Made by a program: the position numbers and the translations under genes. Below are positions 26,901 through 51,347 of a DNA stretch of 64,000 nucleotides, one piece after another. This stretch comes from Thalia democratica (taxonomy: Eukaryota): NCBI GenBank assembly GCA_965202585.1, contig OZ241829.1, forward strand, positions 65,782,001-65,846,000. Reading direction: 5' to 3'. Numbering within the stretch: the first letter of the stretch is position 1; each line of letters begins with the position of its first letter. The notes under the pieces were generated by a model. That model worked only from the letters and a program-made list of their open reading frames with translations, had not been told where the DNA came from and did no database searches.

Positions 26901-27110
26901 TTGTTCTGACCCCGGATTTACGGCTTACTTGAATTTCTTTATCTAATTTAAGGTATCATTGGTTTAGTTAAATACATTTTTGTGACGTCATAATTCAGAA
27001 TACTTCTTCAGTTTTTGATATCTATAGTTGTCTTTTTTGGTTTTAAATCTTTTCTAAGATGTCGTTTAAATGGTGTTGATTTTCAGAAAAAAAATTATCT
27101 TCTTTTTCAG
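19380..27110 (+). repeat. Tandem array of five 1.2-1.8-kb units, each with a 139-nt exon-like core and a family-A-like MITE
   Basis: Cores at 19642-19780, 21403-21541, 23205-23343, 24424-24562 and 25977-26115, each flanked by ctaacag and gtagga. MITEs at 20168-20514, 21950-22297, 23724-24034, ~24800-25068 (partial) and 26504-26643. Confidence 0.92.
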
Positions 27111-27809
27111 GATGAATGTGAATTTTTATCCAATATCCTTATTTTTCTACGTTTAATTTTCGATAATATATCCCTTTTTCTACAGTATTTGTTTTTAACG
27201 TAGTAATCTAGTTCAAGTTTTTTATTATAGAACCAACTAACACGTTTGATGTACTTTTAGTTTATATTAGTGATGAAAGAAACTTTTGTTACTCAAGTTT
27301 TTGTAGTTTTATATGGTTGTCTTAACTCAGTGAATACCGCTTGTTCTGTATTTATTTCCTTTCAACAACAACAAATAATATTTCTCTATTGTATTTGGTT
27401 AGAATCTTTTACAGAACCTTGAAATTGATCTTTATTTGACTTTTGTTCTTCTTAAAATTATTTTATATAGTTGTAAATTTATGCAAAGCTGGTTTGTGTT
27501 GACCTATCAATTTTACATTTTTGTACGTTTCTTCATTAGCAAACCAAAATGTATTTTTAATTAAGTTAATAGTTGTTATGTTTCGCAATAAAAATCCACG
27601 ATTTTCAAAAATGAATTTTGTTATGTTATTTAAATAAGTTTATAATTTAGCTTTGGTTGAAGTGCAGTTTGTACTTTGCTTTATTTTAAATAAGATTTTT
27701 TTTTTGACATTAAACAAACAATATTTAATTCTAGTAAGTACGTCTCTTTTTTAAACAGTGTTCTAAGTAGACTAATTGATTCATTATAATAATATTCAAT
27801 ATGATAATA

Positions 27810-27929: not shown

Positions 27930-28921
27930 ATTTTATGCCTTAAACTTGTGTTTTAAATATAAAACTAATGTTTTTGATTAAAGGGAAAGAAAATTAAACA
28001 CATTTAAACTGTAAAGTAAGTTGAACTAAAACTAGATAACACTTAACTAATTTTAAGTTGAATTTCTCGAATATGTGATTGCTTTTGTGTTAACAATATA
28101 AGTATATATTTCGAAACGCTACTTTTAATTTTGATGCTTTCAAATTTCTTAGTTTTTACTTATGTAATTAAATAACCAACATATCAAGATAGCAAGTTAA
28201 TCTCAAAATAAACGTCCTCTAAGGTAAATCTATGGTAAATTTTTACAGCTTCAGCTTAAAAGTTCAACGTTAGTAAAATAGAAATAATAATTTAATATAA
28301 AAGCAAGTACTAACTAAATTTTTGAATAAAAGCAAAACTAAATGAACACTTAATTGAATGATAATTTTAAACCATTTGTATTTTTGCTGTCATTTTTAAA
28401 TTTTGTGATGCGCTAAGTTGCAAACTAAGATTTTTAAAGAGTTTCTAACCTATAACCGTTCATAAAATTAGTGTTTGACAAAAGTGTGCACATTGAGCAG
28501 TAAACTTTGAGAAACCAACTTTAAACCACTTTATTTCTGTTTAATTTTGTATCAAACCGTTTCTGAAATTATAAAATTACTGAAGTATTTCTAGAGTATC
28601 GAGTTCTTAATTTGTTAAACCTAAATTCTTCGTATGTTTTTTAGCTTTAAAGTTAATATCAAAAGTAAAAGAACAAAAACGTTATGTGTTATTATTAAAA
28701 TTTTATTTATAAATCTTTTGTTATCCGATTTTTATTTATTTTTCATTCCAGTTTTGTACCTCAAGTCGTGCTTGTGGCCTCCTTTTCCTGACGCATCTTG
28801 TTAGTGTTATTTTACCCATAAAAACAGAACATACTATTAACAGACGAACAATTTTATAATTTTACGAAATAGAAACTAAAACTATTTATTATATTTAAAA
28901 TGTGTAATTTCATAGGTGATT

Positions 28922-29027
28922 ATGAAGAATGACCGAGAAGACGCAAAAAGAACCCGAGAACCAGAAGCGAAGTAACTAAAAATACTGCAAATTTGTTCCT
29001 ACGTCATAGTGTTTCTTACTTTGATAG
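28922..29027 (+). other. Candidate first coding exon (signal peptide or type II anchor) of the sushi/CTL gene, apparently disrupted
   Basis: After an acceptor-like ttcatag, ATG at 28,922 reads MKNDREDAKRTREPEAK*LKILQICSYVIVFLTLI. It ends in a phase-1 donor (G|gtgaac at 29,027/8) compatible with the phase-1 start of CCP1 at 33,677. There is an in-frame TAA at 28,973. Confidence 0.4.
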
Positions 29028-29160
29028 GTGAACATTGTTTGTTTTAGTTTATAAATTATAGTTATAGTTGTTAAAATTAGTTGTATTTTAATATTTAAGC
29101 ATACATTTCAATGTAATTCAGTATAATACAAGTCAAAAGGTAAAATACATTTTAAAGTAA

Positions 29161-29982
29161 AGTTTTTTACCATTATTACGTCATTAAATTATTTGGAATG
29201 AAGCAGGACCTGACCACAAGGATAGCCTAAACCAGAGGTCGCAGTGAAATTAAAAAAAAACGTTGTCCACACTTAATTAAAAAATTATAAAAACAAAAAT
29301 GGGATAAAATATACTATGATAAAGCACTCGTAAATAGTTTTATTATGAACATTCAAGTTCTTTTGTTTTTAAGTAGTGCTTAATGTTATCTGCTATTGAA
29401 ACTGTCGCTCTACAAACGAAATTTGGTTAAATGTTTAGTTATACATAAAGGTTAAGTGAGCTATCAATTAATTAGCATCAACTGCAAATCTGATGATACT
29501 CCTTTAACTTAATAGCTTAATACTCAATAAGAATTAAAAACCGCAGTCATATCATTCCAGGGCAAAACTAGTTTTTTACTATTATTACGTCATTAAATTA
29601 TTTGGAATGAAGCAGGACCTGACCACAAGGATAGCCTAAACCAGAGGTCACAGTGAAATTTAAAAAAAAACGTTGTCGCGGTCCACACTTAATTAAAAAA
29701 TTTAAAAAACAAAAATGGGATAAAATATACTATGATAAAGCACTCGTAAATAGTTTTATTATGAACATTCAAGTTCTTTTATTTAAAGTAGTGCTTAATG
29801 TTATCCGCCATTGAAACTGTCGCTCTACAAACGAAATTTGATTAAATGTTTAGTTATACATAAAAGTTAAGTGAGCTATCAATTAATTAGCCTCACGTGC
29901 AAATCTGATGATACTCCTTAAACTTAATTCCTTAATACTCAATAAAAATTAAAAACCGCAGTCATATTATTCCAGGGCAAAA
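29161..29982 (+). repeat. Tandem direct duplication of about 409 bp
   Basis: 29,161-29,569 is nearly identical to 29,570-29,982 (attattacgtcattaaattatttggaatgaagcaggacctgaccacaaggatagcc ... ttccagggcaaaa). Confidence 0.92.
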
Positions 29983-31139
29983 TTATGAGTTAACAGTAGC
30001 TTTAAAAGGTCCTTACAGTTCAAAAGAAAAACTTATGGAGTATTTGTTACATGTCGTTTTGTTGTAGTAGAAAAATGTAAAAGTTTAAATTACTGTGTAC
30101 ATCATATACACAACTGAATATTTATTTATATTATTTCGAACATAACCTTTAGAGTTGTACAACTCAGTACTATTGACTAAAAAGTTTATTTAAGCTTTTT
30201 ATTTTATAGGTTTTTCGTACTTTTATAAACTAAAAATACATACTCAGCTTGAATATATTTAATTATATCATTAATTGTTTAAAAACACAGTAGTAATAAA
30301 ATTAAAGTTTGCTTTACAGTGTTAAGCTTATTAACTGTACCACAAATTTCAAGTAATTTATTTTTTGATACGCAAAGTTTATGATAATTTTTAGCTTTGA
30401 TGATGTTGTTAAAAATAGTTTTTTGTTGAGAGTTACTTTTATTATTTACTTTAAACTTAGAGATTAAAACAAATACAATAATCAAACTTACTATCGAATT
30501 TGTAACAACTCAATGAGTAAAAAATGTATTATGTTTATAAAGTTTTCAAAATAGTATAGTTATTAATGAAACTTTAAGTACTTGCTATTCTTTAAAATAA
30601 AATATTAAAGTCAAAAACAAAAATAGTGTTGAAGTAAACTTATAAACTGCAGTAATTGTTATAAACGAAATTACAAAATGTTAAAAGTTAAATGTTATTA
30701 AACTTGTATTAATACTTGATCTTTGAAAAATAATACTTTATCTTAACTTAGATTTAAAAGTTGCGCAATATTTATATTCTATACAACATTAATTAAACAA
30801 TTTAAAATTTGAGTTTTTATTCTACACAGTGTTTAATGCGTAATGCAATGATCACGAACTAAAAGCTGTTTAAAGTAAGACTGACAAAGCTATATATACT
30901 AAATTATATAAGTCTGTTAAATTGACAAAAATTTCAAAGTCTTAATAACGAATTGAATAACTACTATAGAGCTATCATTCAAGTTATTATGAGTGTTAAA
31001 TTAGTTTTTTATACAAAAAACTTATTGGATACAGCTTACAATGAAATAAAAATATAAAATACCAATACGATATAAACACAAGCATAAATGCAACAAACTT
31101 AGAAAATGGTAAAGTATGCAATTACGGACACGAAAATGT

Positions 31140-32345
31140 TATGATTTTAGATATTTAGCGAAGTGTCTACATTTACCAATAAACTCAGTTCTGGAGTTGA
31201 GAGAGGAGTTTTTGTCAGCGATTGCTATTTCCTATTTTTTAATATTACACAGGGTGCATATTCTGCTCGGTTTGCGTTGATTAATTTTATGCATTATCTT
31301 CCATTTAACATTGTTCTTAATCATATCTTCATTGAACTTAGCGGAGTGAAAAAATGAGCTGAATTTTGTGGATTCTTTCAGATTTTAATTTCTGCAGCTA
31401 TGCATATTTTCGTTGTATCTTGTTTTAAAGTTTTTGCAGTGTATCCAAAATAATGCTGTTCTTTGTTATTATATGTGACAGTAGCTTTGTATATGACACG
31501 TCTGGAAAGGCATTTACCTTCCACTGGGCATGAGATTCTAATTCTACAATTGAAACTTGTTTCATTTTTCTTTTTGTTTTTACTTTCCTCTATGATTTTA
31601 GACTTGATTTGCTGATTTCGGATTCTATGTTGGGCATACATGAATAACTTATTTTGATTGCCTCTCTGTTGAGAATTTTATATATATTTGTTTTTAGGTA
31701 AAAGCTTATCTACTGATTTAATTTTTTTTTCCCTATTTTGGTCTTTAATGTTGCTCTAAAAGTAAGGTTGTAGTATAACACTTGTTTTTTTTTCTTTTTC
31801 TATCGCCCCTACCATCATTTTGATTTGAGTATTCTAAAACTTTATTAAAACCACTGTTTTTTAACGCTTTCTCGTATGATTTCTTGTAATTATCAGACAT
31901 AGTCATGTTTTTTGATAAATCAAATAGTATATTTTGTTTCATATTAGGTGGCTCTCTTTTGACGCTTGGTTAGATTTTATGTTTATGTTTTTTTCTTTAG
32001 CGTTTGGTTTTCTGTGGGGATGATATATCATTCTGTAGATCAAGTAATACATCCAGGAAGTCTATGTTACTGCTGTCTAATTCAATCTTATTTTTTAAGT
32101 TTTGGTCAGAGAAAACCGCTCTAATTTCTTTTCTTGTCTTTTCTATGACTCTTTTTGATCGCTTTTTAATTATAGAAATTCCATCATCGCGCTACTACTC
32201 GAAGTTATCTTTAGATAAAAATTAGTTTAGGTTATTCAATAGGAACAAAACGATTAACTTGCAAACTTCAGCGCCATGGTAGCTTCCCATCGGAACGTCA
32301 AATAGGTCTTCTTTTGCATTCTTTTTGATCCAAACTTCGTTGACA
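31140..32345 (-). mobile_element. Decayed, 5'-truncated Penelope-like retroelement (RT C-terminal half plus GIY-YIG endonuclease)
   Basis: Frame-hopping translation of the - strand gives WIKK..LFDVPMGSYHGAEVC, (**)RDDG, DFLDVLLDL, KILNREAIKISYSCMPNIES, NCR...CPVEGKCL..RVIYKATV....YFGYT, and CTLCN...LNSRTEFIGKCRH. These match the RT, linker and GIY-YIG/CCHH motifs of Penelope-like elements, with multiple stops and frameshifts. Confidence 0.88.
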
Positions 32346-33676
32346 TGCCTGAGAACTGTCTTGCACGAGTGTAGTATAGTATATATGTCTGAGTTTTGTT
32401 ATTTTCATATATTTTTTTTCAAGTTCGATCGATTTTTTTAGTAACAGATTTTTCGAGATACTTGGGTAGGATTCTTCTATATTAAATTTTATAAACGTGT
32501 AACTACTCTTGTTGTTGATTTTATTAAACCATTATATAACATTATCAATTTTTATCCATTGCTGTAACTTAGTTTTTTTCTTTAACTTTATTTTAAATTC
32601 TTAACAATAATTTTATATTATAAACAATCAAATAGTAAGTTAAACGCTTGTGCAACAGCAAACAATTAATGTATATGTTATAATACACAACATAAAGGTA
32701 ATTTTAAAGTAAATAAGATAACTGGTCACTCTTCTTAACATTCTTAAAACTATTGAAAAAATCAAAGACCTTATGTAAACACAAGAAATTTTTTCTTCAA
32801 TTAAAATATATTGCATTTGGTTTAAATTGTATATTTGTACAAAGTGTTTACATCCTTCTTTTTATTCAAAATTTCATTGCTTGCCTAAGCTTACCGATTT
32901 TCTGTATAAGATTCTATTTTTGTTTTGTAGTAACAACTGCCAGAAGTTTTTAAGCAATGGACATTAATTAAAACTGAGGATGTTTCTTAAAATCATGTCC
33001 ATCATACTAACTTTAAACCTCATAACAGTTTATACTGAAAAAAACTCTATTTATTAAAAATAAGTAAAGTATTTCAACTAAAACATTAAAAGACTTTAAA
33101 TTAAAACAGTAATGATAAAACAGAAGCGTTTAAATTTGTGTTATTTTTATCACACATGTTTTAATGAATTCACCTTGTTTATATCATAGTTTTAATTATA
33201 ACTGTATAAATCTATTCGTTTAACTTACAAAAATAACTATTATATACTATAACTTTTACTAACAACTTAAAAAGGACTTGGTAATTTGAAGCCCTTGGTG
33301 ATTTAAAATTTTTACAATTATTTTTGTGCAAAAAAAAAACGATGCTCACCTTTTATAATTTAAGACGAACTTTCTATAAAAAATAAATAGTCATTCTTAT
33401 GGAAAAAATTAGAAAATTTTGACTCTCTTGAGGTAGCTTACTTAGTAATTTTGATAAAAAAAAAGACCTTTCGTCTTTCGACGAAAAGCCTTTAGAAAAA
33501 AAAAAGGGAGAAAATGAAAAAAAAAAATGGCGCAAAAAAGCCCCCGACGAGTCACTTTGTACGCTTTTACCACAAACGGTGGTTTCTATTGAGAATACAA
33601 TACATAGTCAGGCGCGTTACACCACAGTGACTATCTGGTGAGTTGAAGGAAACTCATAACTTTTATTTTGTTTCAG

Positions 33677-36600
33677 TTTGCACGATCTTTCCCTACGTGG
33701 ACCATGCGATTCGCACCATCGAAAACTACGTGCAGGATGATGAGTACGAGTTCTTGTACATCCAGCTGAAGTTCACTTGCAAAAATGGTCACTCCTACGA
33801 GCAAAACCGCGCCAACAATCTGGTCGACTGCGAGATTGAAAGGGGATTTCCGGATTCCTCGCTGCTTCCCGTCTGCACGCAAGGTGAGACTCCGATAAAA
33901 CTAACATCTAAACAAAAATAACTTAAGTTTAGTTATAAGTTACAAAACTATAAACCAGAAACATTATTAGGTTGAGTGTACAAAATTAACATTTTAAATT
34001 AAAATCCAGGGTATAAAACATTATTACTGATTTGCTGCCTAATACTTATATCAATGTGTGGATAAAAATATTTACGAGTTGTTGTGGATAGTTAATTAAA
34101 ATATTCAGTGTGCAGCCCTATACCGGAAGTAGAGAACAGCGCCAGCTACAGAGTGTATTCGGATGTATATCCTCATTCAAATGAAAGCAACCCGTTCATT
34201 GGAAGCTCGGTTGAATATTTTTGCGAAAACCATTACGTGTCCTTGCAAACTTTCGCAAAATGTCTTCCGAACGGTACTTGGGACACCATTATGCAATGCT
34301 ATCCAGGTTTGAAACTTTTATTGCTCTTATATTTTAATATCTTTAGACAAAAAGTTTTGGAAGCAACGTTGTGTTGAATATATATATTACTGTCATGGAA
34401 GTTGTATTAGCTTTTCAAAGTTGTCATTTGTTGTATTCTACCTTATCTGTTCTGAAGACGAAAGCTAAGTCTAATATTCTTATTAAACTATAATTACTCT
34501 TTTTTGTAAATAATCAAAAAGTAATTTCAAGTAATACTCTCAGTAGTTTTCGTTTTAATGAAGACTAAATAAAAATAAAATGTACCATTTAAACGAATCT
34601 ACTCAAAAGTAATTAAAAGTTGTAACTAAATGTTGTTTGACTTTTACGTACATAGTATCTTTTAAATAATTAATTTTGCTCATGGGAATGTCAGACTAAA
34701 TCAGTAACTTCATAAAGTTAAATACTTTTTGCAGATTGTGGACAATCTCCAACGATTCTGAATGCAATCAAAAGTGTTACTTACCTTCAATTGAATGAAA
34801 CCTTGAGCTTGGAATCAAAAGCGACGTACACGTGTGAGGATGGCTATTGGAGCGTGCCTGCCATCAAAAATGTCACTTTCACGTGCCAAGAAGCTCCCTT
34901 GTGGAAGACTACTGAGTTTATATGTTCAAAAGGTGATACATAAACAACAACTTTAACTAAGCAAGTACTTATAAGTGTAATAAACTAGTTTACTAAAAAA
35001 TACTATTGAAAAAAAAGACAAACTTGTTAAAATTATCAAGCTTAAATTTCAGCTAAATTAAGTTATATAAGCTTAAGTTTTCAACAAATATATTAAGTTT
35101 AGTTATAATTTATATAGCTATGAGTAAAAAAAAGTTAAGTGGTCAAGTATGTAAAATTCGTATTTCAAATTAAAAATCCAGTATATAAAATTTTTAACAT
35201 ATATTTTAAACAAACCATGTCTACTGTAAATATGTCTTTAAAAAAAATGCTGTTGCAAAACTTTTTTTACTCTTTTAAGCTAAGTACATTTTAACAAACT
35301 ATGTGATAAACTTGTATTATTCAATCAACCAACGTTCACAATTCAGAATGCCCAAAAACTGAACCGTCAACCGGTGTGATAGCCTCACTAGAAAATCTTG
35401 CTTACGACGACTTGTTCGTAGCAGGCAGTAAACTCACGTTTTCATGTGGAAACAATGGAGTTTTGATTGGTGAGGAATCAGTAGAATGCCATGTCAATGG
35501 AAGTTGGAACTCTGCTTTTCCATCTTGTTACAGTCGTTAGTTTTAACTTACTTTTACTACACTAATGAAAAATCAAATAAAGAGAAATTTTAATGACTTC
35601 ATAAGTTCTTTTTTGGAGATACAGTATGTGTTCAGTTAATATTTTTGACATAAGAACTTTTTTTTATTCAAATAAACTAAATTACAGCTAAAAGAAAACT
35701 TAAATTTAAAACACATCTATATATAAAAGGATTTTTTTTAACTTTTTTTTTTCGCTGGAAATAACTTTTAACTAAGTAGTTAAATATACAGTTCTTGTTT
35801 TCAAACTTATTGTTTAAAAATAATTGCAAAAAGTCATCTAAAAAGTAGTTAAGTTCACATTAAAATTCACAAGTTTATAGCTACAAAACGCTTGTAAGAA
35901 TTCAAGTAATAAAAACACGTTGTTTTGAGCTATTTATCTATTTTTAAATAAAACAGAGTGTCCATCCATGGATCTGGAACTTGCCAACGGCTACGTTTAC
36001 TTCACCAACCCGCTTCGACGGGGCTACTTTCTCGCCAGTGACGTGTTGAGTTACGAGTGCAAGGAAGGTTATTTTTTCCTGGAGGGAGTCAAAGAAGATT
36101 ACGTGTACGAGTGTGCGGAGAATGGCGCGTGGAACAACACAAAAAGTCCCTTCTGTGTCACCGGTACGTTGACGCCAGTAGTCGTTCACCAACTGCATAT
36201 TTGTATTAAGGATTTATTTTCAAAGCAATAAGATTAATAACCTTTTTATGTTTCTTAGTTTATAAGTTAGTAAAAAAAAGTTATTTTACATGTTTTGTTG
36301 TGTGAAATTGATTTGCACGTGATTACAAAAGCCTTATGTATCAGATACAATTCTCAGAGTTCAAAAAAAAAAAATACAGTTGAAAATTTAAAAAACTTAT
36401 GCATGTGTCTAGCTTTTTTCAACTGCTGCAAATAAACTGACTTAGATTGTAAGCACACATCTGTTCATCTATAAAGAGCACAGAAAATAGTTAGCCAAAT
36501 GTATTTTAACGTATCAATAGTAGCTTTAAAAACAAGGTGTACATAGTTTTTAGCTGAAATTGTAACGATTCAAGTATTTAAGCAAAAACTTTAAAAAACT

Positions 36601-39600
36601 TGGAATTATAAAAAATCTAAATATTTCCACTGTTAAGTTTTAAATTGTAGAACAAAAATATTTTTGAAATTTATTTCAATAAGTAGTTATTAGCAGAGAG
36701 ATACTTGAAACTTTAAACCTGAGCAACTCAAAAATGCTAACATCTAAAAGTGTTTTTTACACACATAGATTGCGGCGACCCACCCGAAGGTGACTTGGTT
36801 TCTAGGAATGTCACTGACGGTCCGGCCGGAGACAAGCTGTGGAGCGGCGTGGAAGTCACCTACGAATGCAAACCCGACCACGAGCTGAAGTGGGGGGAAG
36901 CGGCAGTTGTGGTTTGCGGGAGCGACGGAAGTTGGAGCGAAGGTACCGCGCCTACATGCGCTCCCGGTACAGTTAACAAACTAATATCTAACACAGCTTG
37001 TTGTGTAATTATTTGTGTTGACTACAAAAAAGCTTAACTTACATAGTAAAGAGCTTTTTTAAATATTAACAATTACGAAAGTTCGAATTAACTATTACTA
37101 TTAGGTTTCGGTGAGAAAAATTCCGACCTTATCAAATACTAATAAAGTAGTAAACTGCACTATAGAGTGTTGTTTATGTAATGAGACCTGGTAACAAATA
37201 GAATAACTAAATCGCATTTTTATTATAACTATTTACTAACACAGCTTTTTAAAATATTTTGTTCTCTTCCTGTTAGTGTGCGACGTGCCACCCATGGTCG
37301 AGCATTCCACCACTTCCAACGACACCGTGGCGCTTGAAGCGGAGAGCTTGGCGTTGAGCGCGATCGAGTACCACTGCGACAGCGGGTACCACATAAACGA
37401 CGAATCGCTGAGAAGAATCAACTGCGAGTCCGGACCTGTTTGGAAGTACACGCGGCTGCCTACGTGCTTAAAAGGTGATAACATTAAACGTTTAGGTGAT
37501 TTTTAAAACGCGACGACCATAAACTACAGTACATGTGACATTCTGAGTAATAGTTTTTGCGGGGCAGTTTACTGCTTATTGGCTGATGGCGAAAACAGCA
37601 TTCCAGCTTTGCTGAACTTAGCCGAAATAACAACTAATTTTTGTAACTCAAAACAGATTTTAAGTACAGTTTTAATATTTCACAGTTTGTGATGATGTAC
37701 CCGACGTACCTAACGCCAGATCAACTAATTTTACTAACGTTGAAAGAATAGAGGATGATTATGTAAATGGTACTACGGTGGAAATAATTTGCAGTGAAAA
37801 TTACACACAAATCGAAACACAGACGGTGTGTGGCGTCGACGGCAAGTGGACACCAAAAATGAATTGCTACCCAGGTCTGAAACTATGTTTAGTTTTTATA
37901 AAAAAAAATCTTATTTAATTATATCTACAAACATATTTCTGTGCTAATCTTATCCAAGCTCAAAAAGGCATATGTTTTAAATAAAGTTAAGAGGTATGAT
38001 ATCTAAGTAACTAAGTTAATAAAATTTCATTAAATATATTTTTTTTCAGAATGCGAAGCATTAAAAGACCGTGACCATGCAAACAAAACTGTAATAAAGT
38101 CAGTGGTGATCAACGAAAATAAAACGCTTGAGTACGTAGTCAGCTACGCATGCGACGAAGGTTACAGAACTGAACCGAGAAATACTGACACGATCCACAC
38201 CTGCGACAACGGCAAATGGAGCTACAATGAGTTTGAATGCGTGGAGGATCTTAAAAGTTGGTAGTGTTACGTATAAGCATAGATTAACAATTTTTAATGT
38301 TACTTGAATACTTACTTGCTTTTTTCGTTAGCTTTTAATAGCTTTCATTACAAACAGTTTGCCCGGATTTACCGTTAGATGATCCGAACAGGGAGTTTAA
38401 GTTTTTAACTGAAGTTGAAAAAGGGTATTTGGTTGCTGGAACTGAGGTTACTGTGACCTGTAACGGCTTTACAGTTGTTAGCAACACGGATCTGACATAC
38501 AACAAGTGTCTTCGAAACGGAAAATGGCAAAATGTCTTTCCTATTTGTTTTCCAGGTTAAAACTTTAGATTTTGACTTTTGTTTTATAATTATTTAAATT
38601 ACAGTAAGATAACTCTGTTTTAATTTGTATTGGTAAAAGTTATTTAGAGGTATTTATATGTTAATCAGTGTAAAATCTTAATAAAATTTTTATCGATATA
38701 TATTTTTTTATTTACTAATCTACTTTTTTTTCAGATTGTTTGGATTTGAACACTTGGTCTTCTTCTGCTATTATGGTGAATATTATTAACTATGATCATA
38801 ACTACCAACAAAACAGTGGACGTTTGTATCCCACTCGAATTGAATACGACTGCTCACATGGTTATACGCCACTAAACCCTCACGACACAAATATTTATTG
38901 CAACCCGGAAACTGGCAAATACGAACCGGAACCAAAATGCCTTATTTGTAAGTAATTTCCTATGTTATTAAGTATGTTTCTCTCAATGAAAAATTATTGA
39001 AGATTATGTATATCAACCTAATTAAAAACTACATTTATTTTAACAAAACACTAATGCGCATCTATTTTTAAACTTTGTTTTAATTTTTGTTTTTTTAAAT
39101 TTTTCTATACTTGTTTTTTAGCTAAACGAGGTTGTATAAACAAAGTAAAACAAAAAATTTGTGTAATTTCTTATGTAACCAACAAAGTTGTACAAACAGA
39201 CAAGTAACTAACAACCTTTTTACGTTTCAGTCTGCCAAGGTGTACCGTCGTTCGACGGAGCAACGACCCACATCGTCCACCAGCGGCAGCCCCAACTGTC
39301 CAGTTTCGTCTACGGCGACGTGCTGACGTTTTCCTGCGACGGCCACAAACGGTTTCTTCCTTCCAACCCGTCGCTGACTTGCCAGGAAAACGGAAGGTGG
39401 GGACCCGACACGCTGATTGGCTGCGTTGAAGGTAAGAAAAAATCCCCAAAAGTATGAGTACAATCTAATTTGACTTTTTTTTTTACAGATGACGTGTGCC
39501 CGTCTCCACCGCAAATCGCCTTTTCCTCGCACCACGACTACTACAGGCCTCCGACTCCGGCAAACTCTACCGACTCGATGTGGCTTCCGGAAACGATCCT

Positions 39601-42600
39601 GCATTACGAATGCAACGATCAGTACCCGATAACCGTTCCCGACGACTTCTTCGGGGCGAAATGCACCAGCAGCGGCGCGTGGGTGGGCGCGTATGGAAAA
39701 TACCATCCTTCGCATGAAAAACCTCACGATATTAAAATGGACGACAAGAAGTTCAAGGAAAAGTTTGGAAAATGCGTCACTGGTATTTTTAATTTTTAAT
39801 GTTTAGTCAACCTTTTTGTGTTTATAATTCACTTGAAGTAAGCTAGTAGCAGTTTATAGTTTTTTAGTTAGAAATTACGTTCGAAAAGGTACATGATGTC
39901 AATTTCAAATTATTTTGATTTAAAAACTAAACTGCTACCACCAGTATCTTTGAAATATGTTGTTCCTAGGTTAACAATTACCACTTCTAATTAAGTTTTT
40001 AGCAAGCCTTTATGTTTCCAATTTTAGTTTGTTAAAACTTTTTTTTTACAATTGTCTATATTGACCCATGTACGACTCTGTTCTCGGCATGCTTTTTAGA
40101 AATTGCGCGGGATTTTTAAAAGGTTTATAAAATAAATTTATTTTAAAAATGCAAAATTTATTTCAGAGTGTGAGTTTCCCGATCCACATAACTCAATAAA
40201 AACTGTGCTAAAATATCTTGAAGTCAATGCGTCATACTCCATACCTTCAGTCGTCAGGTACACCTGTAACGAGGGTTACCATTGGACGCGGGTGGCAGTT
40301 GTGAGCTGTCGCCACCAAGATATTCAAGATAAAGGTCCTTTCGGAAGATTAAACACGCTGCTTGGATTCTGTGCACCCGGTTAGCTTCTTTTAGTTTCAA
40401 AGATAAATTTTTGTAAACAAATTACAAAACAACTGAATGTTTTAAATTAACGACCGTAAGTATTTATCTTTTCTGTTTTTTAATATGTCGAATAATTTAG
40501 TTTTGTTAAAGCCTTTCAGCGCAAAGTATTGCTACTGAAGTTTGTACATAAGTTTAAGGTAAAATAAAAAATTACTAATAACTTTTAGCTTGCCCGCCAC
40601 TCCCATTTTTAATACGAAACGGGGTTAAGCGAGTTATTAGGCAACCGAATCGAAGGAGCTTGGTTTCCTTCTCGACAACCATACACTACTTTTGCAACCA
40701 AGGATTCACTCCGACTTTTGTAAACAGCCGATACAGTTGCAACTACGCTGGGAGCTGGCAAAATTCAGAGCTGAACCCTAGGTGTTTGAGGCGTAAGTTG
40801 TAACAATATTGATAAGTGTTTGTTTATCAGTCCACCTACTATTTGACTTTAAGGCTGCCCTAACCTGCAAAACGATCCGTACGGAAGTCTTGAAGCATCT
40901 GTACAAGCTCGGACTAATTTCTATCTGGCCGGTGACCGAGTTGAACTAAGCTGTGATGATGACTACGTGTTGAGCTCAGACTTAACAGCTTCAAGTACAA
41001 CTTTGTCCTGCCTGTCAAACGGAAGGTGGAATTACGAAAAAATACCGGTTTGTATTAAAAGTGAGTTACGCTAATCAAAAGCTTTTATTCTTATTCTGTT
41101 GAACTTTCATTTATGTAAGAAAAAAATTTAAGACGTTCTTTTATTTTGACACCTACACTTGTTTCAGAAGTTTTTAAGCACTAAAATTAGTGACCTAACA
41201 AGTTTAGTTGATTCGTTTTTTCATTAGTTTAAATGCATTTAAACTAATTTATTAACTTAATTTTATCTACAATATACTTCTTTTCTACTCAATTTGTTTA
41301 TTTTAAGGATGTGACGACCCTCCTCGAGGCGACTTTCTAAATTCCACGATAAAGTTCAGTCACGCGCAAGGAGAATACTGGTCGTACACCGTAGTGGAGT
41401 ACGTATGCAAGGAAAAACACACTTTTAAATATCCCGATGAGGACGGGACTCGCACTTGTGAAGGAGACGCAAACTGGAGCGATGACTCCCCTCCTGAGTG
41501 TGCTCCCGGTTAATAAATGATGAAAATATTATCACTATCCCAACAAATACTTTTAGTTATATTTAAATCTGTGCGTAAGAAATAACAAATAAACTACACT
41601 TAACAGAATGTGAAACTCCTCCAGCCGTTGAAGGCTCAACAATTAATATTTTAAACGACTCATTTATTGAATACGAATGTTTAGACGGTTATCACATTGA
41701 CAACGAGTCGAACAGCGTTTTCGAGTGCAGGCTCGGTCCTGTTTGGTTTCCCTTGGAAACTCCTGTCTGTCTAAAAGGTAAATAAATACCAGTTTTTACT
41801 GCAAACTGTTTGTTAGACAAATTTCAAGCGTCTAAAAAGATCCTCTCAGGCTCAAATCAATTTCCTACTCTAAAATTTTTTAACGGACTATTTTTAAGTG
41901 TCTTGAAATGTTATCAAATTTATTACGAGTTTATCTTTTCTAGAATGCAACAGCATACCCGTGTACGATAAAACGTTGCCCGCTGTTGTTACAAAGAATG
42001 TTTCAAGGGAGGGCAAGCTTATAACCGGATCATCGTTGAATTTCAGCTGTCAACCAAACTACGGCCTGATCAACTCGATATCGAGTTGTGGCCTCGACGG
42101 CAGATGGACGCCCGAGATCACGTGTGTTCGAGGTATGTATATTTGCACGTGAAAAAATAAATTAAAAACAACTCATTTTTTTGTTCTTAAAGATTGCGGG
42201 AATCCAGACGAGATCGACAACGGATCTTTCCTGGTCAACGAAGAGTCGGATGAGTATCCTGAAGGTGAAGAGGAACTGTACAGCAGCAAGTATCCGCACC
42301 AGGTGACTTATTCTTGCAACCCGTTTCACTCGACGGTTCCCGGAAGCGAGATGGTGTTGAAATGCTCGAATACCAGCTTCACGTTTGAACCTGAGTTGCC
42401 GGTCTGCTTGCCAGGTGACCAAGTCGTATACAAATGTTTAAGCTCATGATTTGTACTAAATTTTATTAAAAGTTTTAATCGGTTTTTTAAAGTTTTAATG
42501 TTTCAATTTATTTTAAAACCACAGAGTGTTCAACCCCGCCAACCAACAATTATTCCACGTTTGATTTTTTCATGAGCACTCACCGTGTCTACCTACCGCC

Positions 42601-45600
42601 GAACAGAATAAAGTACACTTGCGAAGCCGGCTACAGAACTTTGCCTTCAGGTCTCAGCGTGCTGCAGTGCGGTGATGACGGGGAATGGACATTTGATGAT
42701 TTCAAAAGCTGCTACACTGGTTAGATTGTTGACTAGGTTTATTTTGATGGCTTAAAAGTTAAAGTAAAACGGTCAGTTAAAAATATTGCTTAAGTAGTTA
42801 TAGTATATTTTTATTCTACTAAAAGGTGATTACAAAACATAATATTATACTGCTTTAGTAATAATAAAAACATTTTTAAACAACGTTTTTGTAATTGGAA
42901 CTATAAAAGATTACTTTAATTACATTGCGTTTTAAAAAAGTATATTTCTAAAAGCTTTAATACGTCATTCACAATACTTTGAGCAGAGTGTAAACTTTTT
43001 TCATAAGTTTTTATATTTAAATAATACTAAACAAATTTAAAACAGTTAAGCAAAAATTACGGAAAAAATATACAAATACTAATTAAAGTACATTAGTATA
43101 ACTTTTTCCACAACTTTAATAGAAACAGAATGCAATTCTGCGCCCCCACAATTAGACAATGCAACTCAGCATTTCAAATGGCAGTATGAAGGGGTGCATC
43201 TTCCAGGCACGCAAGTCAATTATGTTTGCCAGAACGGCTTCATCATGGCCCCGCAGTTTTTCCAGGGATTTGAATGCAGCGAAAATTCGTTAGAATACGA
43301 CATTCCTCTCACAACCAGAGAGTCGTTTACTTCTGGTGCTTGCTATCCGGGTTAGGTTTCAGAATATATATATATTAATTAAAACTTCTTTTTTGCTTTT
43401 TTATTTAGTTTTTAAGTTTTTTCCCATTTTGAATTAACAAAATTAACTGGAAATCTTCAGACTGTGGCGACTGGCCAGACATCCCGAATGGCAAACGGTT
43501 CACTGCGGATTCACAGTTTTTATCGGACTTGGTAGGAGAAAGACACGTTTTGATAATTTCATCCAACTATTTGTGCAACACAGGATATCTTTACACGAGC
43601 GCAAATAGCCTTGTAACATGCACTGATTCCTCAAAACCACTAGATGTTAAAAGTTGCTCTAGAGGTAATATTTTGTTTATAACTATTTATGAACAAAAAC
43701 ATAAACGTAACTAAAATTAAAAAAATAATATTTAAAAATCTAAACAAAGTTGAAAAGTGTATGTATTCCAGAATGTAAAAGTTTGCCAATTACAAGTATG
43801 GACTTTGCAACCGTCGAATATTACAAAAGGCCAAGGACAGACATTAATGTGGGAGGAACAGAATTCAGGTTTGTTTGCGACCAAGGGTACTTCCTCGTGG
43901 ACCGTCCTGGCTCGTTGCGTGTGAGCTGTGAAAAGCTACGCGACGGTTTTCAAGAAGATCTAGGAATATGCGGAGTCATTGGTTTCAGGTGTGATCTTAA
44001 TGGTATCTGGCACTCTTTGGAAAGATCGCGCTGCATTACAAGTAAATTTAACGTACCACTTTGAATTAAACACTAGTATTTTTTGCATCAAACTAATTGG
44101 CATGTTTAGTAGTTGAGTGAAACGTGTTTAATGAATTTAATTTAGGTTGTCTGACACCACCAAGCGACGATTTGGCAACTTGGAAAATTACCAGCACATA
44201 TTGGGAAGGAAGACTGTTCACCGACACGGTTGTAGAGTACACTTGTCCTGAAACCCACACGCTGACCAACTTCACTGATTCAACTCGTATATGTGGAAGA
44301 GACGGAAGTTGGAGCGATCCTGTTGCACCCAGCTGTATCCCTAGTAATATTCGTTATTATTTTTAGTGAACTCTAGTTTCCAGAGCTTTAGCTTATAGTT
44401 TTACCTCATTAAATACTTTTAAAGTAACGTGTTACAATACACATAAAACTATTTTTCTTAGCTGTTAAATCTCACGTACGATGAAAATAAAAGTTTATGA
44501 ACACTTTGGACACGCTACCAAAGTAAATTCTAAGGAGTGATATAGCTAACGTGTACTAAGTAATGATAATTATTGAGTATTTAATTTTCAGTTTTAAACC
44601 TTTATACTATCAATACTTCTTATGACAATCACTTCTGCATTAAAACATACATATGGGAAATCAACTACTTTTTTTTGTAAAACTTACTAATTTACGCAGC
44701 TTAATGAGTTTAAGGACGTCTGCTTAAGTTTTGTGTTCAATTTAGCTAACTTTAAGTCTTTTGCATAAAAATTTGGCTTTTAGATGGAAGACAATATATC
44801 AAAAAAACTTAATTACTGTTTACAAAAAGTTTGCCTTCTTTGGCAACAAATATAACTGTACCAAATATTGATTAGTTATAAAAGTTTTGAAAATTTCAAC
44901 AAATTTCAGTTTGCGAACTGTTGCCAACTTCCATCGAGAACGGTCAATTCCACCAGTTGACCGATCAGCATGCCAGCATGAAAGATGTAGAAGGAACAAG
45001 GAAGAGTTACGTTTGCGACGAAGGCTACCACCTGCTCATATCCTCTTACTTTCCAGCTTCTTTTACATTCCACTGCAACCAACAAGTACCTCCGAATGCT
45101 GTGCAGTGGAATGAAGTCAGTTCTGGGAGCCAAGTGGCAAAACCGTTGTGCATTAAAAGTTGGTGTTTTTTTATTAAACGTTGTATATGAAAAGCAATAT
45201 ACGCCTTATTGATAAAAAATTTTCAGGACAATGTAAAGCGTATCAAATAATAACGGATGCTCATTCGTACGATGAGGCAGTTGAAAAGTGCGACAATTTG
45301 TCTGCAGACCTTCTTGGACCAACCCTTGACGATGTAGATTATGAAAAGTTTGTTTTAAAACACTTTGCTAACCCTACTACTTTTCTAGTTACGTTTTATA
45401 AAAAGAAAAAATTGCATTCAAAACGGTGATTGTTTATTTTCTATAACATTAAAAATGTAAACTTATACAACAGGTATTTGAAGGCTATAACTCAGCACAT
45501 GAGTGATGAAAACTTCGAGTACACTTACATCTACGGAAAGCCAGAATTGAGCGACACCTTTTTAAACTGGTGTTCAGGCTTCCCAAAACCTTCCGCCTCT

Positions 45601-47954
45601 TCGATCTGCTATTTCATCCGCACAAACGGCTTCTGCGTTGTTAATTTAGACTGTGAAAGCAAACGGCCGATTGTATGCGAAGTTGACCGCTTCGAGCTTA
45701 GGCCAAGAGAAGAGTCAAACTCATACCAGTTTGCCGACGATGCTTGCAGATCGGTAGAAGGTACCCTGATGTCTACGACTTTTTTCATCCCTGCTTATAT
45801 GCCGTAAGTACTTTAGAGAAGTTATCTTTGTTTTTCTTGTTATTTGCATTGACAAATTTCGGTACTTGAATAGTAGAAAACGGTAAGTTAAAACATTTTG
45901 AAACTGAAATGTTTATTTTTATTAAAGTTCAACTGAGTTGACAAGTCGAGCAAAAATAATAATAAGCCGTATTTTGAAAATATTTATATGAACATCTTTA
46001 ATATTTTACCACATTCATAGAGAACAATAATAAAAAACAAGGGTTTATGTTGTCACAAAAACATTTTCTCAGGTCAAAATAGTTTTGCTAAACTTTTAAA
46101 AACTGTACAAATAACTAATTTCTGGAGGTAAAACTAAGCACTTAAAATCTACATGTATTATACTATACCCAAATTACAGTCGAATAAAGAAGATCATAGA
46201 CACATTACCAGGAAGCAAGATGTGGACTGGTTTGCAGCGGCCCGGGTCCGATTATTCCGCAAACGACTTCGTCACCCTGCCCGACGGTAAAAGAATTCTG
46301 ATATCTCAAATATCGCAGTTCTGCCGGCGCGAACCCGACAACTTCCAAAGCATTCAGCATTGCGTGGACTACATCCGAGATCGCGGCTGTTTGAGCGACT
46401 TCGGGTGCTACCAATCCTACCAGGCTTCAATCTGCGAAATTGCCGTCTGCTCAGCTCGAGACGCCAAAGTGCCAAATCTTCCTTACACGAGATGCAGCAG
46501 AGGAAGCTGGTACGTTTCAGCTGACAGATCAGAACGACTTGTCTGTTACGCAGGTACAACAACTGTTTCAAATATCGTTTTAGTATTTTTTACTATCAAT
46601 TTTGATTCTTCAGATGTTCAGCATTTGTTTTCAGACTTGTATACTACAGTAGAATTATTTTAAGACTAAAAAACATGTTACTATGTAAATTTTTCTATAT
46701 CGTTTTTCAACTTAATGTTTTTAAATTTCCGTAATTACTTAAATGACAACTTATAACTTTTTATAATTTAGTACAATTTAGTAAATATATACACGTTTTC
46801 GTAAGTTAATTAGGATAAAAGTAAAGTTAAAAGTTGCTTAAAGCTTTCATGAGTTCATTCATGAGTTTAAAACTTAGAAAATATATTCAAATAGATAAGT
46901 ATTGCTACCTAAGCTAAAATAGAAGTCAAACTGAATTAAGACTCAAGTAACAAATTGTATGAGTTTTGTCTACAATTATTTGTAATTGGACTATAAATGC
47001 AAGAAAAATAAGTACCGTTTTGAACTAAAATTATAATAACAGTATAATAAGTGTATTTGCCACAAGCTCATATCAAGTGCTTTATATAAGTAATTAAAAG
47101 CTTATGATAAAAATTACGCACAAATTCTATTCAAAAAAGCCAAGCAAAGACTTTAAGCATGTAGCATTCTGTTTGTACATTTGTAGACAAACTACTTATT
47201 CAAAAAGAGATGAACTGATCCTTCTCTATATACAATTCATCAACGACATTACTTTATAAAACAGGATTTGACATCAAACTGACAACGGAAAAAGGAAGTT
47301 GGGAAGAAACAAGAGACATGTGCGAAGATATGGGAGGTCAACTGGTCCACAACACTTTGAAGAGATACGTTGGAAGACTTCGTACATCGTATAAGGAGTA
47401 AGTAGCTAAAGAATTTACTCAAGTTAAGTTGTGTATTGCTACTGAGCAAGTGTAATGAACAAGTTTTTAAAATTTGGTATTATCCATTCAAGCTCATTAG
47501 ATTGATTATTTTTATAAATCTTTTGATAAAACGTGTTTTGGACGTGGAATAAAACATGACACTTTATTTTTTTTTTTACCATTTCAAAATCTCATTGAGC
47601 ATAAGTTTTTTCTACATTAATAAAATCTTAAATTAAATATTGAAAAATAAAAATTTTGAAATTTTTCACTTATTCAGTTTGGTGGAAGAAGCGATTGACA
47701 GCAACGATGTTTGGATCGGATGCCAGCGGGCCAAGGACAAAACTTTGAACAGCGAGTTCCAACTGTTGAACGGCGAATATTTGTTCGCTTCCCGCGCAAA
47801 CCCGTTTGAACAGCTGCTCTACTATTGGTCGGCTTCAGTGCCACGTGACACCGAGCTCGATCAAGCCGTTGTCATAAGGCACGAGAAAAAAGCGCTCGAA
47901 AACTTGCCCAAGTCACAAGAACTTTACGGGCTTTGTGAAATTGGACATTATTGA
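33677..47954 (+). CDS. Giant sushi/CCP-repeat plus C-type lectin protein: 26 CCP domains, CTLD1, CTLD2, short Cys/Trp linker, CTLD3; about 2,225 aa from the first CCP exon; start exon not securely identified
   Basis: 31 GT-AG exons join into one open frame of 6,677 nt ending in TGA. CCP exons (all phase 1-1, typical C..C..C..W..C pattern, with W missing in some): 33677-33883, 34109-34306, 34735-34932, 35347-35535, 35957-36163, 36769-36966, 37277-37474, 37686-37874, 38050-38256, 38358-38555, 38735-38947, 39231-39431, 39489-39782, 40167-40379, 40589-40792, 40854-41060, 41308-41508, 41607-41777, 41944-42132, 42193-42414, 42525-42719, 43129-43350, 43461-43664, 43772-44041, 44146-44343, 44910-45158. 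Lectin exons: 45227-45347, 45474-45803, 46180-46553, 47265-47397, 47678-47954 (phases 1-2, 2-2, 2-1, 1-2, 2-stop). CTLD hallmarks: SYDEAVEKC, SWEETRDMCEDMGGQL, MWTGL, VWIG, REPDN..HCV, IVCE/SICE/GLCE. Confidence 0.92.
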
Positions 47955-50900
47955 TTTATTCTGTTTTTGTTTTTTCTATAAGTTAGTTTTTTCTATAAAA
48001 CTCAAACTTGTATCAAATGATTTCTTTTAAAATTGTATGAGATTTAAATTTTAAATTTAGATTTTATAACGATATTTATCGTTTATATTTTGTCTAGTAG
48101 TATGTTTGATATATTAAGATATGGATAATAAAAAAATTAGAAATATTCTGTTTTATTATATTTCAATTTTATTAAGCTTTGCATTTTGTTAAACTCCCGA
48201 AAACTAAATTTTATTTCTCAAACTTTCAAGTATTGGATTATAACAATTTTATAATTGTGTACTTTGAAAAGTTTCACTTGAAATAAAAGTTGTTTTTTTA
48301 CTTCGTTGTTTACTTATTATACTTTAGTTTTAAAGGTTTGATTTATAATACTAAAGTTGTGGAGTGTATTAAGCAAAATTATATTTTTTAAATAATCATA
48401 AGTATTTCAAGTTTCTAATATAAAGTATAAGCAAATATAAGACTTAAAATAGTTTTCTTAAGGACGCTACAGTTTAAAATAAAAAAGACTATTTTTTATA
48501 ATCAAATTTACCCAAGGTAAGTATTAAATTTTAATATATGTTTCTTAACATTTTTAAGCTACTTAAAAATGTAGCAGTAGGTAAAGTTTTTGTCTTAGAA
48601 AAACAAAAAAGACCTTGTGAGTAATTTTTGTGATAGTTTGTTTTAACTATGACTTAGCATGTTTAAAAATATCACGAAGCAGCAAATATATATAAATGTA
48701 ATGAATAAAAACATAAAAAATTAATTGATCTTTTAGGTCAAAAAAAAGCTATGCTGTTTTCTTTAGCCTTAATAAAAAGTGTAATATGTAAAAAAGTAAA
48801 AAAAAAAACTTAAGACTTTTTTAAATTGAATAAAAAATAAAAGTTTCTCTAAATTTATTCGAAACGTTTTGAATTTTATAAATAATAGAAGAGTAGAAAA
48901 ATAAGTTGACTTTTAAGATCATGAAATTACTTTTTAATGTTTTGATATAATCGAAACAAAAAAGTTATTATCTATAAAGCAAAAATAAACGTTTAAAATT
49001 TTTTTTTAACTGAATACGAACCTTAGACTCAACTCCTTTATATTATCTCAAAAATGTGTTTAAATATTATAAAGAATACCCATGTAATAAAAATAGATAG
49101 GCTCTTATATACAAAATAATGTAGTTTTTGTTTTATCTTAATTAAAATTATTATACCTATGAAGTTAGATTATAATGTTTTTTATCTAAACTTGTTATAA
49201 ATCATAAGCTCAATTAATTTTTTTTGAAACGTGTTTATTCTTATAGATATAAACAATTAAAAAATAATTGAACTTTAGGTCACAAAGTTTTTTTTGATAA
49301 CTCTATCTAAAAAAATTTGGTACTGAAAAACCAAGAAGTTTGAGCAAGATCTTGTTTGTTAAAATTGAAAAAAATTATAAGTGTAACAGATTAAATTAAA
49401 ACTGAGTAAAAGTTAAAAAAAAGTTTTCAAAATGCACGAATATCTAAAAGCTTCTCTTTCCCACTATAATAATATTAAAAGTTGTTTATACTCCACATCA
49501 TACATCATGTAAACTTTTCCTTTTAAAATAAAGTTTTACAAAAAAAAAGTTTTTTTATTTTAAGGAAAATTAATATATCTTTTGAATATTGAAAATATAA
49601 AATACTCGATATGACAAAATGCAAGAAATAAAAATAAATAAATTCATCAATTTTGTTGTCTACAAAATGTTGAATTGAATTAACAAAATCTTAATTAATG
49701 TTTAAAAAAAAGAAAATTTAAACTTATTAATGAAAATATAAGTAATCAAACTAAATAGTAACGCTAAAAAAAATAAGGAATTTTTCTTACCATGACGAAA
49801 TATACCGATTGAATAAGCAATTAGCAAGGCCTTATAATCGTTCTACATAATGAAAATATGACAAACAATGTTGTTTGCTGTTTTTTTTTTTTACTTTGAA
49901 GTATTTCAAACAACTCATATAGATATTATGAATATGCTTGCGGTACGTTGTAAAAAAGTAGAACGAAAAATATAAATTTTTAAAACTTTACATCGGAAAG
50001 CTACGAGAATTAGAATATGGTGTAAGCCTAGCTTTAAATGATTTAGTTTCTTAAACTTAGATCGTACATCTTAGAAAATAATTTAGTTAGTGGAACGTCA
50101 TATACAATGTTTTTTCTAACAAAAATTCCAGCACGGACCAAAAGTTATTTGATTTCGTAGGAAGAGTACCAGAATTAGTTTACTAAACCGCCTCAAATCT
50201 ACTTGAACATAACGTTTTAATAAAAAAAATGTTTTAGATTTAAAACTCTTTATTTCTGGAAATCTAGCAATTCTGCTGGAAGGAATTATTTAAGCTTCAC
50301 GCCAAATTCTTGCGATTCAAAACGAATGTTTACAATCTAAATACTTCAACAAACACCGACACGTATTAAAAAAAAAGATTACTGAGGATTAACTAAGAAG
50401 TTCATTGTAACTTTAATTGAAAGTGATATACAAACTAGTTTTTTAAAAACGACATTTTATTCTTACGAAAGATAAAATAGAAAAACGACTTTTAAGATAG
50501 TTATTGAAAAAACTTTGGTCAAAATATATTTATGAGTTATGTGAAAAAACATTTATTTTAAGCTTCTAAGTTTCGAAAAATAACTGTTACATGTTAAATA
50601 ATGGTTTCAACTGCTGAGCTGATTTTAGTAACAAGTTTAGTTGGGTTACAAGTTGTTGAATATTTTATAACATTTTTTGTTTATTATAACGATTATTTTC
50701 AGGAAAAAAAAAACTTTTCATTAGTTTTTATAATTTTACACTTGAAATTTTATGCTTACTTTGCTAATTTTATTTTGTAACCCAAGACACATTTTACCCA
50801 ATCTGATTTTTTCTATAGATAGTACATTATATTCTTTTTAGTTTTTAAAAAACAACAAATTGAAAACTAAAATAAGTGATAGTTATATAAAACTTATAAA

Positions 50901-51347
50901 CTTTTAAGTTTATTGAAAACGACAAAAAAATTGACATTCGGTAATATGGTCAAGGGAACTGATTTATGCTTAAATCTTTAAAAATATCAAAGAATTAAAT
51001 TAATTAATAAACTCTAAAAATTTTTATACTGTAGATAAATGATTAGAAGAATATCTACATAAGTGACTTGTTGCATTTGCATAAATAATCTGAGTAACTT
51101 TTTAACTTTTTTATAACTGTGTTTCTAAAAGTTGGCATAATAGCTTTTAAAAAGTTATTTTACTGTATTAGTGCTGATTAAATGTTTTTGTTAAACGTGT
51201 TTTTAAAAGAATTTCTATATTTTTTTTTTGGGTAGATCTCAGCACTTATAACAAAAGAAAAAGTATTCAAACTAACAATGTCATAAATATCACTTCATTT
51301 CAATTTTAACACAAAACTGTTAAATATTTTAAACATAATTTATTTTT

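Follow-up and report, generated by a model that had tools for sequence, protein, structure and literature searches.

The lectin-type gene body analyzed here lies in a stretch of 64,000 nucleotides from Thalia democratica (contig OZ241829.1, positions 65,782,001 to 65,846,000; this whole stretch is called the window, plain positions count from its first letter, and C5 denotes the contig). The gene body consists of 26 complement control protein (CCP, or Sushi) modules followed by three C-type-lectin-like (CTLD) modules, and we consider it likely that this segment (33550-47954) is a 5′-truncated segmental duplicate of the 3′ end of a parent gene with 59 CCP modules. A first-pass annotation of the raw letters had read it as a whole gene for an "inverted selectin" with a first exon at 28922. 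At face value, this finding would add an inverted selectin of 26 CCPs to the recognition molecules. The domain order described there, with the stalk first and the lectin part last, is right, but the unit described appears to be only part of a gene. The parent, not the window copy, is the real object of interest.

The window sits in a tandem array of about 480 kb. Our unit counts and breakpoints derive from one assembly, match tables, and eight partial copies. Repetition is visible within the window itself: positions 1-19509 are a 97.9% copy of 40318-59800, and the first 7637 nucleotides (+ strand) hold the 3′ part (CCP14 to stop) of a neighboring short unit, designated copy A, which differs from 40318-47954 at 13 of 3829 exon sites and 20 of 3795 intron sites. 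Genome-wide, the lectin end is present in 18 copies at 97-100% identity. Twelve of these are on C5 at 65.67-66.12 Mb, spaced 28-60 kb apart, and six are on four unplaced contigs. Beyond these copies, the genome search gave a single distant paralogue of the CTLD2 exon, an old one near C5:29.9 Mb (38% identity). A genome search with 33560-45200 returned 15 other full-length unit matches that all start at window position 38992, in the intron before CCP12, and therefore these short units carry 15 CCP modules; a sixteenth unit match, on a short unplaced contig, comprises the 3′ part only. In the one short unit that we examined, a 4.8-kb module (see below) is followed by a private 2-kb segment and then by window sequence from 38994 onward. 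This places the start of homology to the short units at 38992-38994, between CCP11, the last exon limited to the window unit and the parent, and CCP12, the first CCP of the short units. The DNA of 33543-38991, which contains CCP1-11, has a single counterpart outside the window, namely C5:65659298-65664991 in the leftmost unit.

This leftmost unit belongs to the parent, which occupies approximately C5:65,644,538-65,673,700 at the left edge of the array, 156 kb upstream of the window copy on the same contig. The 18 kb upstream of the leftmost unit are unique DNA, overlapping with the window only in the last 103 nt, from 33550 on. A profile built from the window's 26 CCP modules, which recovers all 26 of them by circular construction, detected 33 more + strand CCP modules in these 18 kb. 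Their exons show canonical AG/GT borders and the same phase-1 design as those in the window. Ahead of the first upstream CCP, a candidate signal-peptide exon (MLCGSCQILSLLFNF; C5:65644538-65644583) is the only candidate with a strong phase-1 donor. When this candidate and the 33 CCP exons are joined, the resulting chain of 34 exons stays open for 2,203 codons; its end is in phase 1 and lies about 160 nt 5′ of the homologue of window CCP1. The parent's own part from CCP1 to the stop is intact. The predicted architecture of the parent is approximately signal peptide-(CCP)59-(CTLD)3 with about 4,430 residues. The window unit starts inside the intron between CCP33 and CCP34 of the parent, where it is fused to the end of the 4.8-kb module at 33543-33550, 127 nt 5′ of the CCP1 acceptor. 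The locus therefore combines the features by which a 5′-truncated tandem duplicate is recognized, namely a full parent at the array edge, copies that share its 3′ part and the downstream DNA, and intronic breakpoints.

These features are probably the outcome of a tandem duplication of a segment that reached from inside the parent gene to the downstream intergenic DNA. Along with satellite-like repeats and the 4.8-kb module, the intergenic part carries a gene for a short-chain dehydrogenase/reductase (SDR). With its start point in the middle of a gene, such a duplication would keep the first gene whole and leave every later copy headless. For most units the breakpoint would lie in the intron before CCP12, leaving 15 CCPs, and for the window unit a second breakpoint, in the intron before CCP1, would leave 26. 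The array thereby illustrates how mid-gene tandem duplication can yield one gene body after another that looks intact yet lacks its head; anyone reading the raw sequence, or an automatic annotation pipeline, would take these for about 17 additional lectin genes.

Consistent with this explanation, we could not find a head for the window copy. The proposed first exon (28922-29033, + strand) opens with the ATG at 28922 and is followed by a conserved GT at 29034, but direct reading of this copy shows that codon 18 is a TAA and that neither of the remaining frames is open. The hydrophobic-looking T-rich stretch sits behind this TAA, and no ATG follows the stop. The phase-1 frame carries the TAA in 17 of 17 aligned array copies, again with no later ATG. 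The genome contains at least 40 copies of this exon-like piece, 17 of them in this array and others at 78-88% identity in arrays at C4:34.7 Mb, C476, C5:64.7-64.9 Mb, C5:0.75 Mb, and C2:92.6-93.7 Mb (C4, C476, and C2 being other contigs). An alignment of 30 homologous copies contains indels of 1, 7, and 10 nt and no conserved reading frame. Only in the C4 and C476 copies does the 10-nt deletion produce an open frame from ATG to a phase-1 donor (MKNDREDAKRTQESEAKILQICSYVIVFLTLI) with a signal-peptide-like core. Among arrays that otherwise share 78-88% identity, the 50 nt 5′ of GT 29034 hardly vary. The codon-18 stop, the lack of a conserved open reading frame (ORF), and membership of a shared module rule out 28922-29033 as a first coding exon. 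The hydrophobic segment that the first-pass annotation had placed there cannot be encoded by it, and the type II membrane anchor that had been considered on this basis is left without support.

The shared module is the 4.8-kb repeated segment at 28745-33542, which includes the proposed exon and makes up the distal end of the array unit. At least five other tandem arrays, with spacings of 28-48 kb, contain it as well. One of these, at C4:34.72-34.78 Mb, has the module at about 86% identity and contains no CCP exon in the next 4.6 kb. The module is possibly a promoter/leader or a large mobile element. A 415-bp unit is repeated twice in tandem within it at 29161-29982 (93% match). Scans of 12000-33677 for an ATG-plus-hydrophobic exon with a phase-1 donor gave no convincing candidate, and none was found in the 8 kb upstream of one short unit. 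Among the individual candidates, 27273-27390 (MKETFVTQVFVVLYG...) was discarded for having only weak phase-1 donors, 31905-31968 for lying in a module region with minus-strand ORFs that resemble transposable elements (by eye; Pfam gave no support), and 20982/25555 as an AT-rich chance ORF in satellite DNA. A 38-nt "mini-intron" at 33639-33676 would, on direct reading, leave the wrong frame, and the private 2-kb segment of the short units held no candidate with a usable donor. Hence, we found for the window copy no start codon with a signal-peptide or anchor exon in phase with CCP1, as a complete gene would have, and we conclude that this copy by itself most likely does not give rise to a secreted protein.

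Evidence for transcription came from one marine metatranscriptome run, from which we aligned contigs to 42400-48399. These show joins at 44041/44146, 45158/45227, 45347/45474, 45803/46180, 46553/47265, and 47397/47678, all of them GT..AG, and one RNA contig is spliced from CCP26 through the first CTLD to the last exon. The splice joints from CCP26 into the first lectin exon and onward show, within the 3′ 2 kb covered, that the CCP stalk and the lectin end are part of one mRNA. The same contig continues unspliced past the stop to 48399, the end of the aligned stretch (3′ untranslated region (UTR) of at least 445 nt). Therefore, no later coding exon adds a C-terminal anchor, in line with the earlier statement that the protein ends after the last CTLD without a transmembrane segment. 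At 14 diagnostic variant sites, the RNA contig agrees with the parent type in 13 cases and with the window copy in none. Sites that distinguish the copies include 43869 (G in the window copy), 46374 (T in the window copy), 47969, 47976, 48001, 48027, 48039, 48130, 48133, 48145, 48217, 48253, and 48284. A parent-type transcript is thus seen in open-ocean RNA, although two copies on unplaced contigs match the RNA contig as well as the parent does. More generally, DNA and RNA near-identical to the window are present in marine plankton samples.

Several of the headless copies have accumulated lesions. In copy A, an additional T where the window copy has position 43803 shifts the frame of CCP24 by +1. 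Three copies are interrupted twice, by TAA in CCP24 and by TAG in the exon of CTLD2. A 33-bp in-frame deletion in CTLD2 is common to four copies, and in the units of these four the SDR gene is broken as well. The units of these four (C5:65903328, 65945086, 65986844, and 66028602) are separated by three intervals of exactly 41,758 bp each, with equal scores, and reflect either a very recent round of re-amplification that started from a unit with this damage or redundancy in the assembly. Likewise, two unplaced contigs hold copies identical to each other, which may be very young duplicates or assembly redundancy.

Against a merely truncated, unconstrained copy stands a set of observations that has to be weighed. 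The window copy has no damaged exon among its 31, its splice sites are canonical, and its ORF spans 2,225 codons. The parent and the window copy differ at 17 of 6664 exon sites (0.26%) and at 86 of 7688 intron sites (1.1%), corresponding to an about 4-fold excess of exon conservation. Among eight copies, the exon changes are synonymous in 16 cases and non-synonymous in seven, variable sites make up 1.2% of exons vs 3.3% of introns, and the encoded CCP24 is identical in 14 of 18 copies. The synonymous bias and the low exon variation suggest that constraint also acts on the truncated copies. Furthermore, the junction at 33543-33550 rests on one assembly, the signal-peptide exon of the parent is a sequence prediction only, and the RNA coverage is limited to the 3′ 2 kb. 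The nine synonymous and eight non-synonymous changes between parent and window copy are compatible with constraint on one lineage and none on the other; the low divergence of the exons could also reflect gene conversion or homogenization with a selected parent copy instead of constraint.

If the constraint is taken literally, the window copy might be an independent functional gene for 26 CCPs and three CTLDs whose real first exon was missed; the conserved exon-like piece of the module could serve as a leader without coding function, or the copy could rely on a spliced leader or on an exon far upstream. This possibility, which we regard as unlikely, would account for the intact ORF, the synonymous bias, and the conservation of exons well above introns. 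The almost invariant 50 nt before GT 29034 and the open frame of the C4/C476 paralogues, from ATG to a phase-1 donor, also speak for it. Against it stand the TAA without a later ATG in all 17 aligned array copies and the scans, which revealed no other start exon. A non-coding leader would still leave CCP1 without a preceding start codon and signal peptide, the C4 array carries the module without CCP exons downstream, and the sole RNA that we saw fits the parent type. A related and still less probable possibility is that the headless units are expressed as 3′ cassettes in frame, each with 15 or 26 CCPs and the lectin head; selection would then keep their coding sequence, as hinted by the 16:7 synonymous bias and the low exon divergence. 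Such cassettes could be expressed via the upstream CCP exons of the parent or via a promoter/leader in the 4.8-kb module. The specific version in which the parent promoter drives transcripts that are spliced into the CCP12 (or CCP1) acceptor of a downstream unit seems very improbable to us. Since all CCP exons are phase 1-1, any such join would be in frame, and this use would explain the synonymous bias; however, the units are 37-450 kb away, beyond the stop, the 3′UTR, and an antisense SDR gene, and with 97-100% identity among the copies almost no diversity would be added. No such joint occurs in the RNA, which covers the 3′ 2 kb only.

Finally, part of the array, possibly including the long unit of the window, could be an assembly artifact in which haplotypes or collapsed repeats have been placed in tandem. 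The exact 41,758-bp spacing with equal scores and the mutually identical copies on two unplaced contigs are what such an error would produce. We nevertheless give this idea little credence, because the copies differ at many sites and by private lesions, and because the window copy and the parent differ at 103 sites across 14 kb and hence are not the same reads used twice. In addition, contigs from other DNA runs cover whole 6-kb stretches of the array unit. Taken together, these considerations leave a headless duplicate of the parent's 3′ end as the likely identity of 33550-47954.

Having established the probable origin of the window copy, we return to its modules. The + strand between 33677 and 45158 contains 26 open segments with the four-cysteine CCP pattern. 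In nearly all of them, an AG is found 2 bases 5′ of the first Cys codon and a phase-1 GT 10 bases 3′ of the last Cys codon, and therefore each CCP module corresponds to one phase 1-1 exon of 171-294 nt. In an alignment of the 26 modules, the four cysteines are invariant (26/26) and a Trp column is more than 70% conserved. Pfam Sushi (PF00084) matches 22 of the 26 at E ≤ 0.01, with a best value of 4.9e-9. Four cysteines, a Trp before the fourth, and the Pfam match identify these modules as Sushi/CCP/SCR domains, and the count of 26 given in the first-pass annotation is correct. On the basis of the exon borders, the cysteines, and the Pfam matches, we assign CCP1 to 33677-33883 (no Pfam match but four invariant Cys; the equivalent of parent CCP34), CCP2 to 34109-34306, CCP3 to 34735-34932, CCP4 to 35347-35535, CCP5 to 35957-36163, CCP6 to 36769-36966, CCP7 to 37277-37474, CCP8 to 37686-37874, CCP9 to 38050-38256, CCP10 to 38358-38555, and CCP11 to 38735-38947. 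The modules shared with the short units are CCP12 (39231-39431), CCP13 (39489-39782, with a long insert ahead of the fourth Cys), CCP14 (40167-40379), CCP15 (40589-40792), CCP16 (40854-41060), CCP17 (41308-41508), CCP18 (41607-41777), CCP19 (41944-42132), CCP20 (42193-42414), CCP21 (42525-42719), CCP22 (43129-43350), CCP23 (43461-43664), CCP24 (43772-44041, the donor of which is joined to 44146 in an RNA contig), CCP25 (44146-44343, acceptor in an RNA contig), and CCP26 (44910-45158, spliced to 45227 in RNA). By eye, CCP6, CCP17, and CCP25 belong to one subtype (C.DPP.GD...W....V.Y.C....H...) that returns at every 8th to 11th CCP and recurs three times in the upstream part of the parent. This periodicity suggests that the stalk grew by duplication of multi-CCP blocks. 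The CCP6/CCP7 intron contains a dispersed repeat of about 190 bp (36998-37186) with dozens of matches at 71-87% on many contigs.

The five exons 3′ of CCP26, all on the + strand and all represented in the RNA contig, encode three strongly diverged C-type-lectin-like modules. Exon 45227-45347, with both splice joints in RNA, codes for the N-terminal half of module 1; exon 45474-45803 for its C-terminal half and the start of module 2; exon 46180-46553 for the C-terminal part of module 2 and the N-terminal hairpin of module 3; exon 47265-47397 for the middle of module 3; and exon 47678-47954 for its C-terminal part, ending with the stop TGA at 47952-47954 and continuing into the unspliced 3′UTR. 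Three CTLD-like modules, at about residues 1800-1925, 1926-2053, and 2054-2225 of the model, are thus the last domains, as had been claimed. With single exons as queries and a gathering cutoff of 22.6 bits for Lectin_C (PF00059), the C-terminal half of module 1 scored 18.3 bits (E 0.0042) and that of module 2 scored 14.6 bits (E 0.056), and the exons of module 3, submitted singly, gave no Lectin_C match. For module 3, a local hmmsearch returned an i-E value of 4e-4 (Z=1) with the middle exon, and Lectin_C is present in 96 of the 100 nearest named Atlas clusters of the last exon (score 0.91). Exon 46180-46553 aligned with canonical CTLDs at a local hhalign probability of 57%; the profile behind this comparison was built on two retrieved proteins and is too narrow (Neff 1.6), and it supports module 2 alone. 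A PDB sequence search with the two largest lectin exons produced nothing significant, the best matches, with the C-terminal half of module 1, all being to the C-terminus of the SP-D carbohydrate-recognition domain (CRD) at E ≥ 0.12. A sugar-site-like motif (EPD...LSD) was detected only in module 2, and modules 1 and 3 contain neither part of it. The canonical Ca2+/sugar site, an EPN or QPD tripeptide plus WND, is absent from all three modules of the window copy. Scans of the window exons gave no EGF match. In the 2,225-residue model, the highest Kyte-Doolittle mean over 19 residues is 1.41 and the tail is hydrophilic, so that the scan identified neither a transmembrane segment nor a hydrophobic tail.

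Apart from the lectin gene part, each array unit contains an intronless minus-strand SDR gene, satellite-like repeats, and the 4.8-kb module. The two SDR ORFs in the window (11076-12014 and 51351-52325, both on the minus strand) are intronless and carbonyl-reductase-like (Pfam adh_short, E 1e-34). Genome-wide, we counted at least 13 open copies at 96-100% identity, five copies broken by TGA or a frameshift, and one partial match, and older SDR paralogues with 40-57% identity are found elsewhere in the genome. SDR gene dosage, rather than the lectin fragment, could be the selected reason for the amplification. The satellite-like DNA at 19376-27098 and 59801-64000 forms a tandem array with units of about 1.2-1.8 kb, in which the same + strand open segment of 51 codons (QPEGIEQCFLES...VVPGCERASLYIYG), ending at a phase-1 GT, begins at 19639, 21400, 23202, 24421, and 25974. 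This segment presumably resembles the stretch of alpha-2-macroglobulin before the thioester site; Pfam returned no match, and we found no other alpha-2-macroglobulin exon near these segments.

What the parent might do can be discussed from its domains. CCP and CTLD modules are disulfide-bonded extracellular folds, and therefore the parent product should be secreted. Besides the short candidate signal peptide, the parent has no anchor at either end. The suggestion of a giant secreted lectin gains support for the parent, through its candidate signal-peptide exon, but not for the window copy. Assuming a length of about 3.5-4 nm per CCP, the parent protein would be a secreted rod of about 200 nm with a lectin-type head at its end. 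It probably functions as a soluble or matrix- or mucus-bound recognition or adhesion molecule, and among its CTLDs the middle one alone is a likely sugar binder. A whole-library profile search with the CTLD2 exon retrieved no full-length protein but two short ocean-metagenome relatives, with 86% (P0001) and 45% (P0002) identity. These relatives carry EPN and QPD where the window has EPD, and both read through the same splice donor. This variation suggests that the sugar-site tripeptide matters and varies between related plankton genomes. We take project PRJEB4352 to be Tara Oceans. If these predictions hold, the parent could be relevant to particle and microbe binding in a planktonic filter feeder, or to the binding of the animal's own mucus.

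A tested precedent for the combination of the two domain types is the oyster lectin CgCLec-CCP, which joins CCP and a C-type CRD in one protein, binds microbes, and triggers C3 cleavage via a MASP-like protease (PMC8605247). The oyster protein differs in having one CCP and one CRD with CPD/WPD sugar-site residues (PMC8605247), and the sizes are about two orders of magnitude apart. The selectins (E-, L-, and P-) also combine a C-type lectin domain and a run of CCPs in one extracellular chain. Their architecture is CTLD-EGF-(CCP)2-9-transmembrane helix-tail with the lectin at the free N-terminus, whereas here the CCPs come first and three CTLD-like modules last. There is no EGF domain, transmembrane segment, or tail, and no EPN/WND but only EPD...LSD in module 2. 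Neither the N-terminal CTLD followed by EGF nor the C-terminal transmembrane helix with cytoplasmic tail that define a selectin is therefore present. In invertebrates, the label "P-selectin-like" is commonly given to CCP-rich proteins that carry CLECT domains, and such proteins multiply through tandem duplication (PMC9484242). The type A "P-selectin-like" genes of bivalves are similar to the present case in that they are CCP-dominated, in some cases with CLECT, and lie mostly in tandem-duplicated clusters; they are automatically named whole-gene duplicates in clusters of 2 to 12 (PMC9484242), unlike the one giant gene with about 11-17 near-identical headless 3′-end copies in units of 28-60 kb that we describe here.

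With the long CCP-only proteins, namely factor H (20 CCPs), CR1 (30 CCPs), and the product of the polymorphic CR-like CCP gene of Ciona (cited in PMC5465252), the gene shares the CCP rod, the single-exon phase-1 modules, and, as the subtype periodicity suggests, growth by block duplication. None of these three ends in C-type lectin modules. The complement-regulating function of factor H and CR1 depends on specific CCPs that are not recognizable here, so that the CCP fold alone is shared. Within the Thalia genome, the C5:29.9 Mb locus is an old, separate paralogue, in contrast to the window locus as a young partial copy. Our full-text literature search found no paper on a (CCP)59-(CTLD)3 protein. 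The building blocks of the parent are widespread ones. The window copy is no selectin and is likely a partial duplicate of a gene, of the usual kind.

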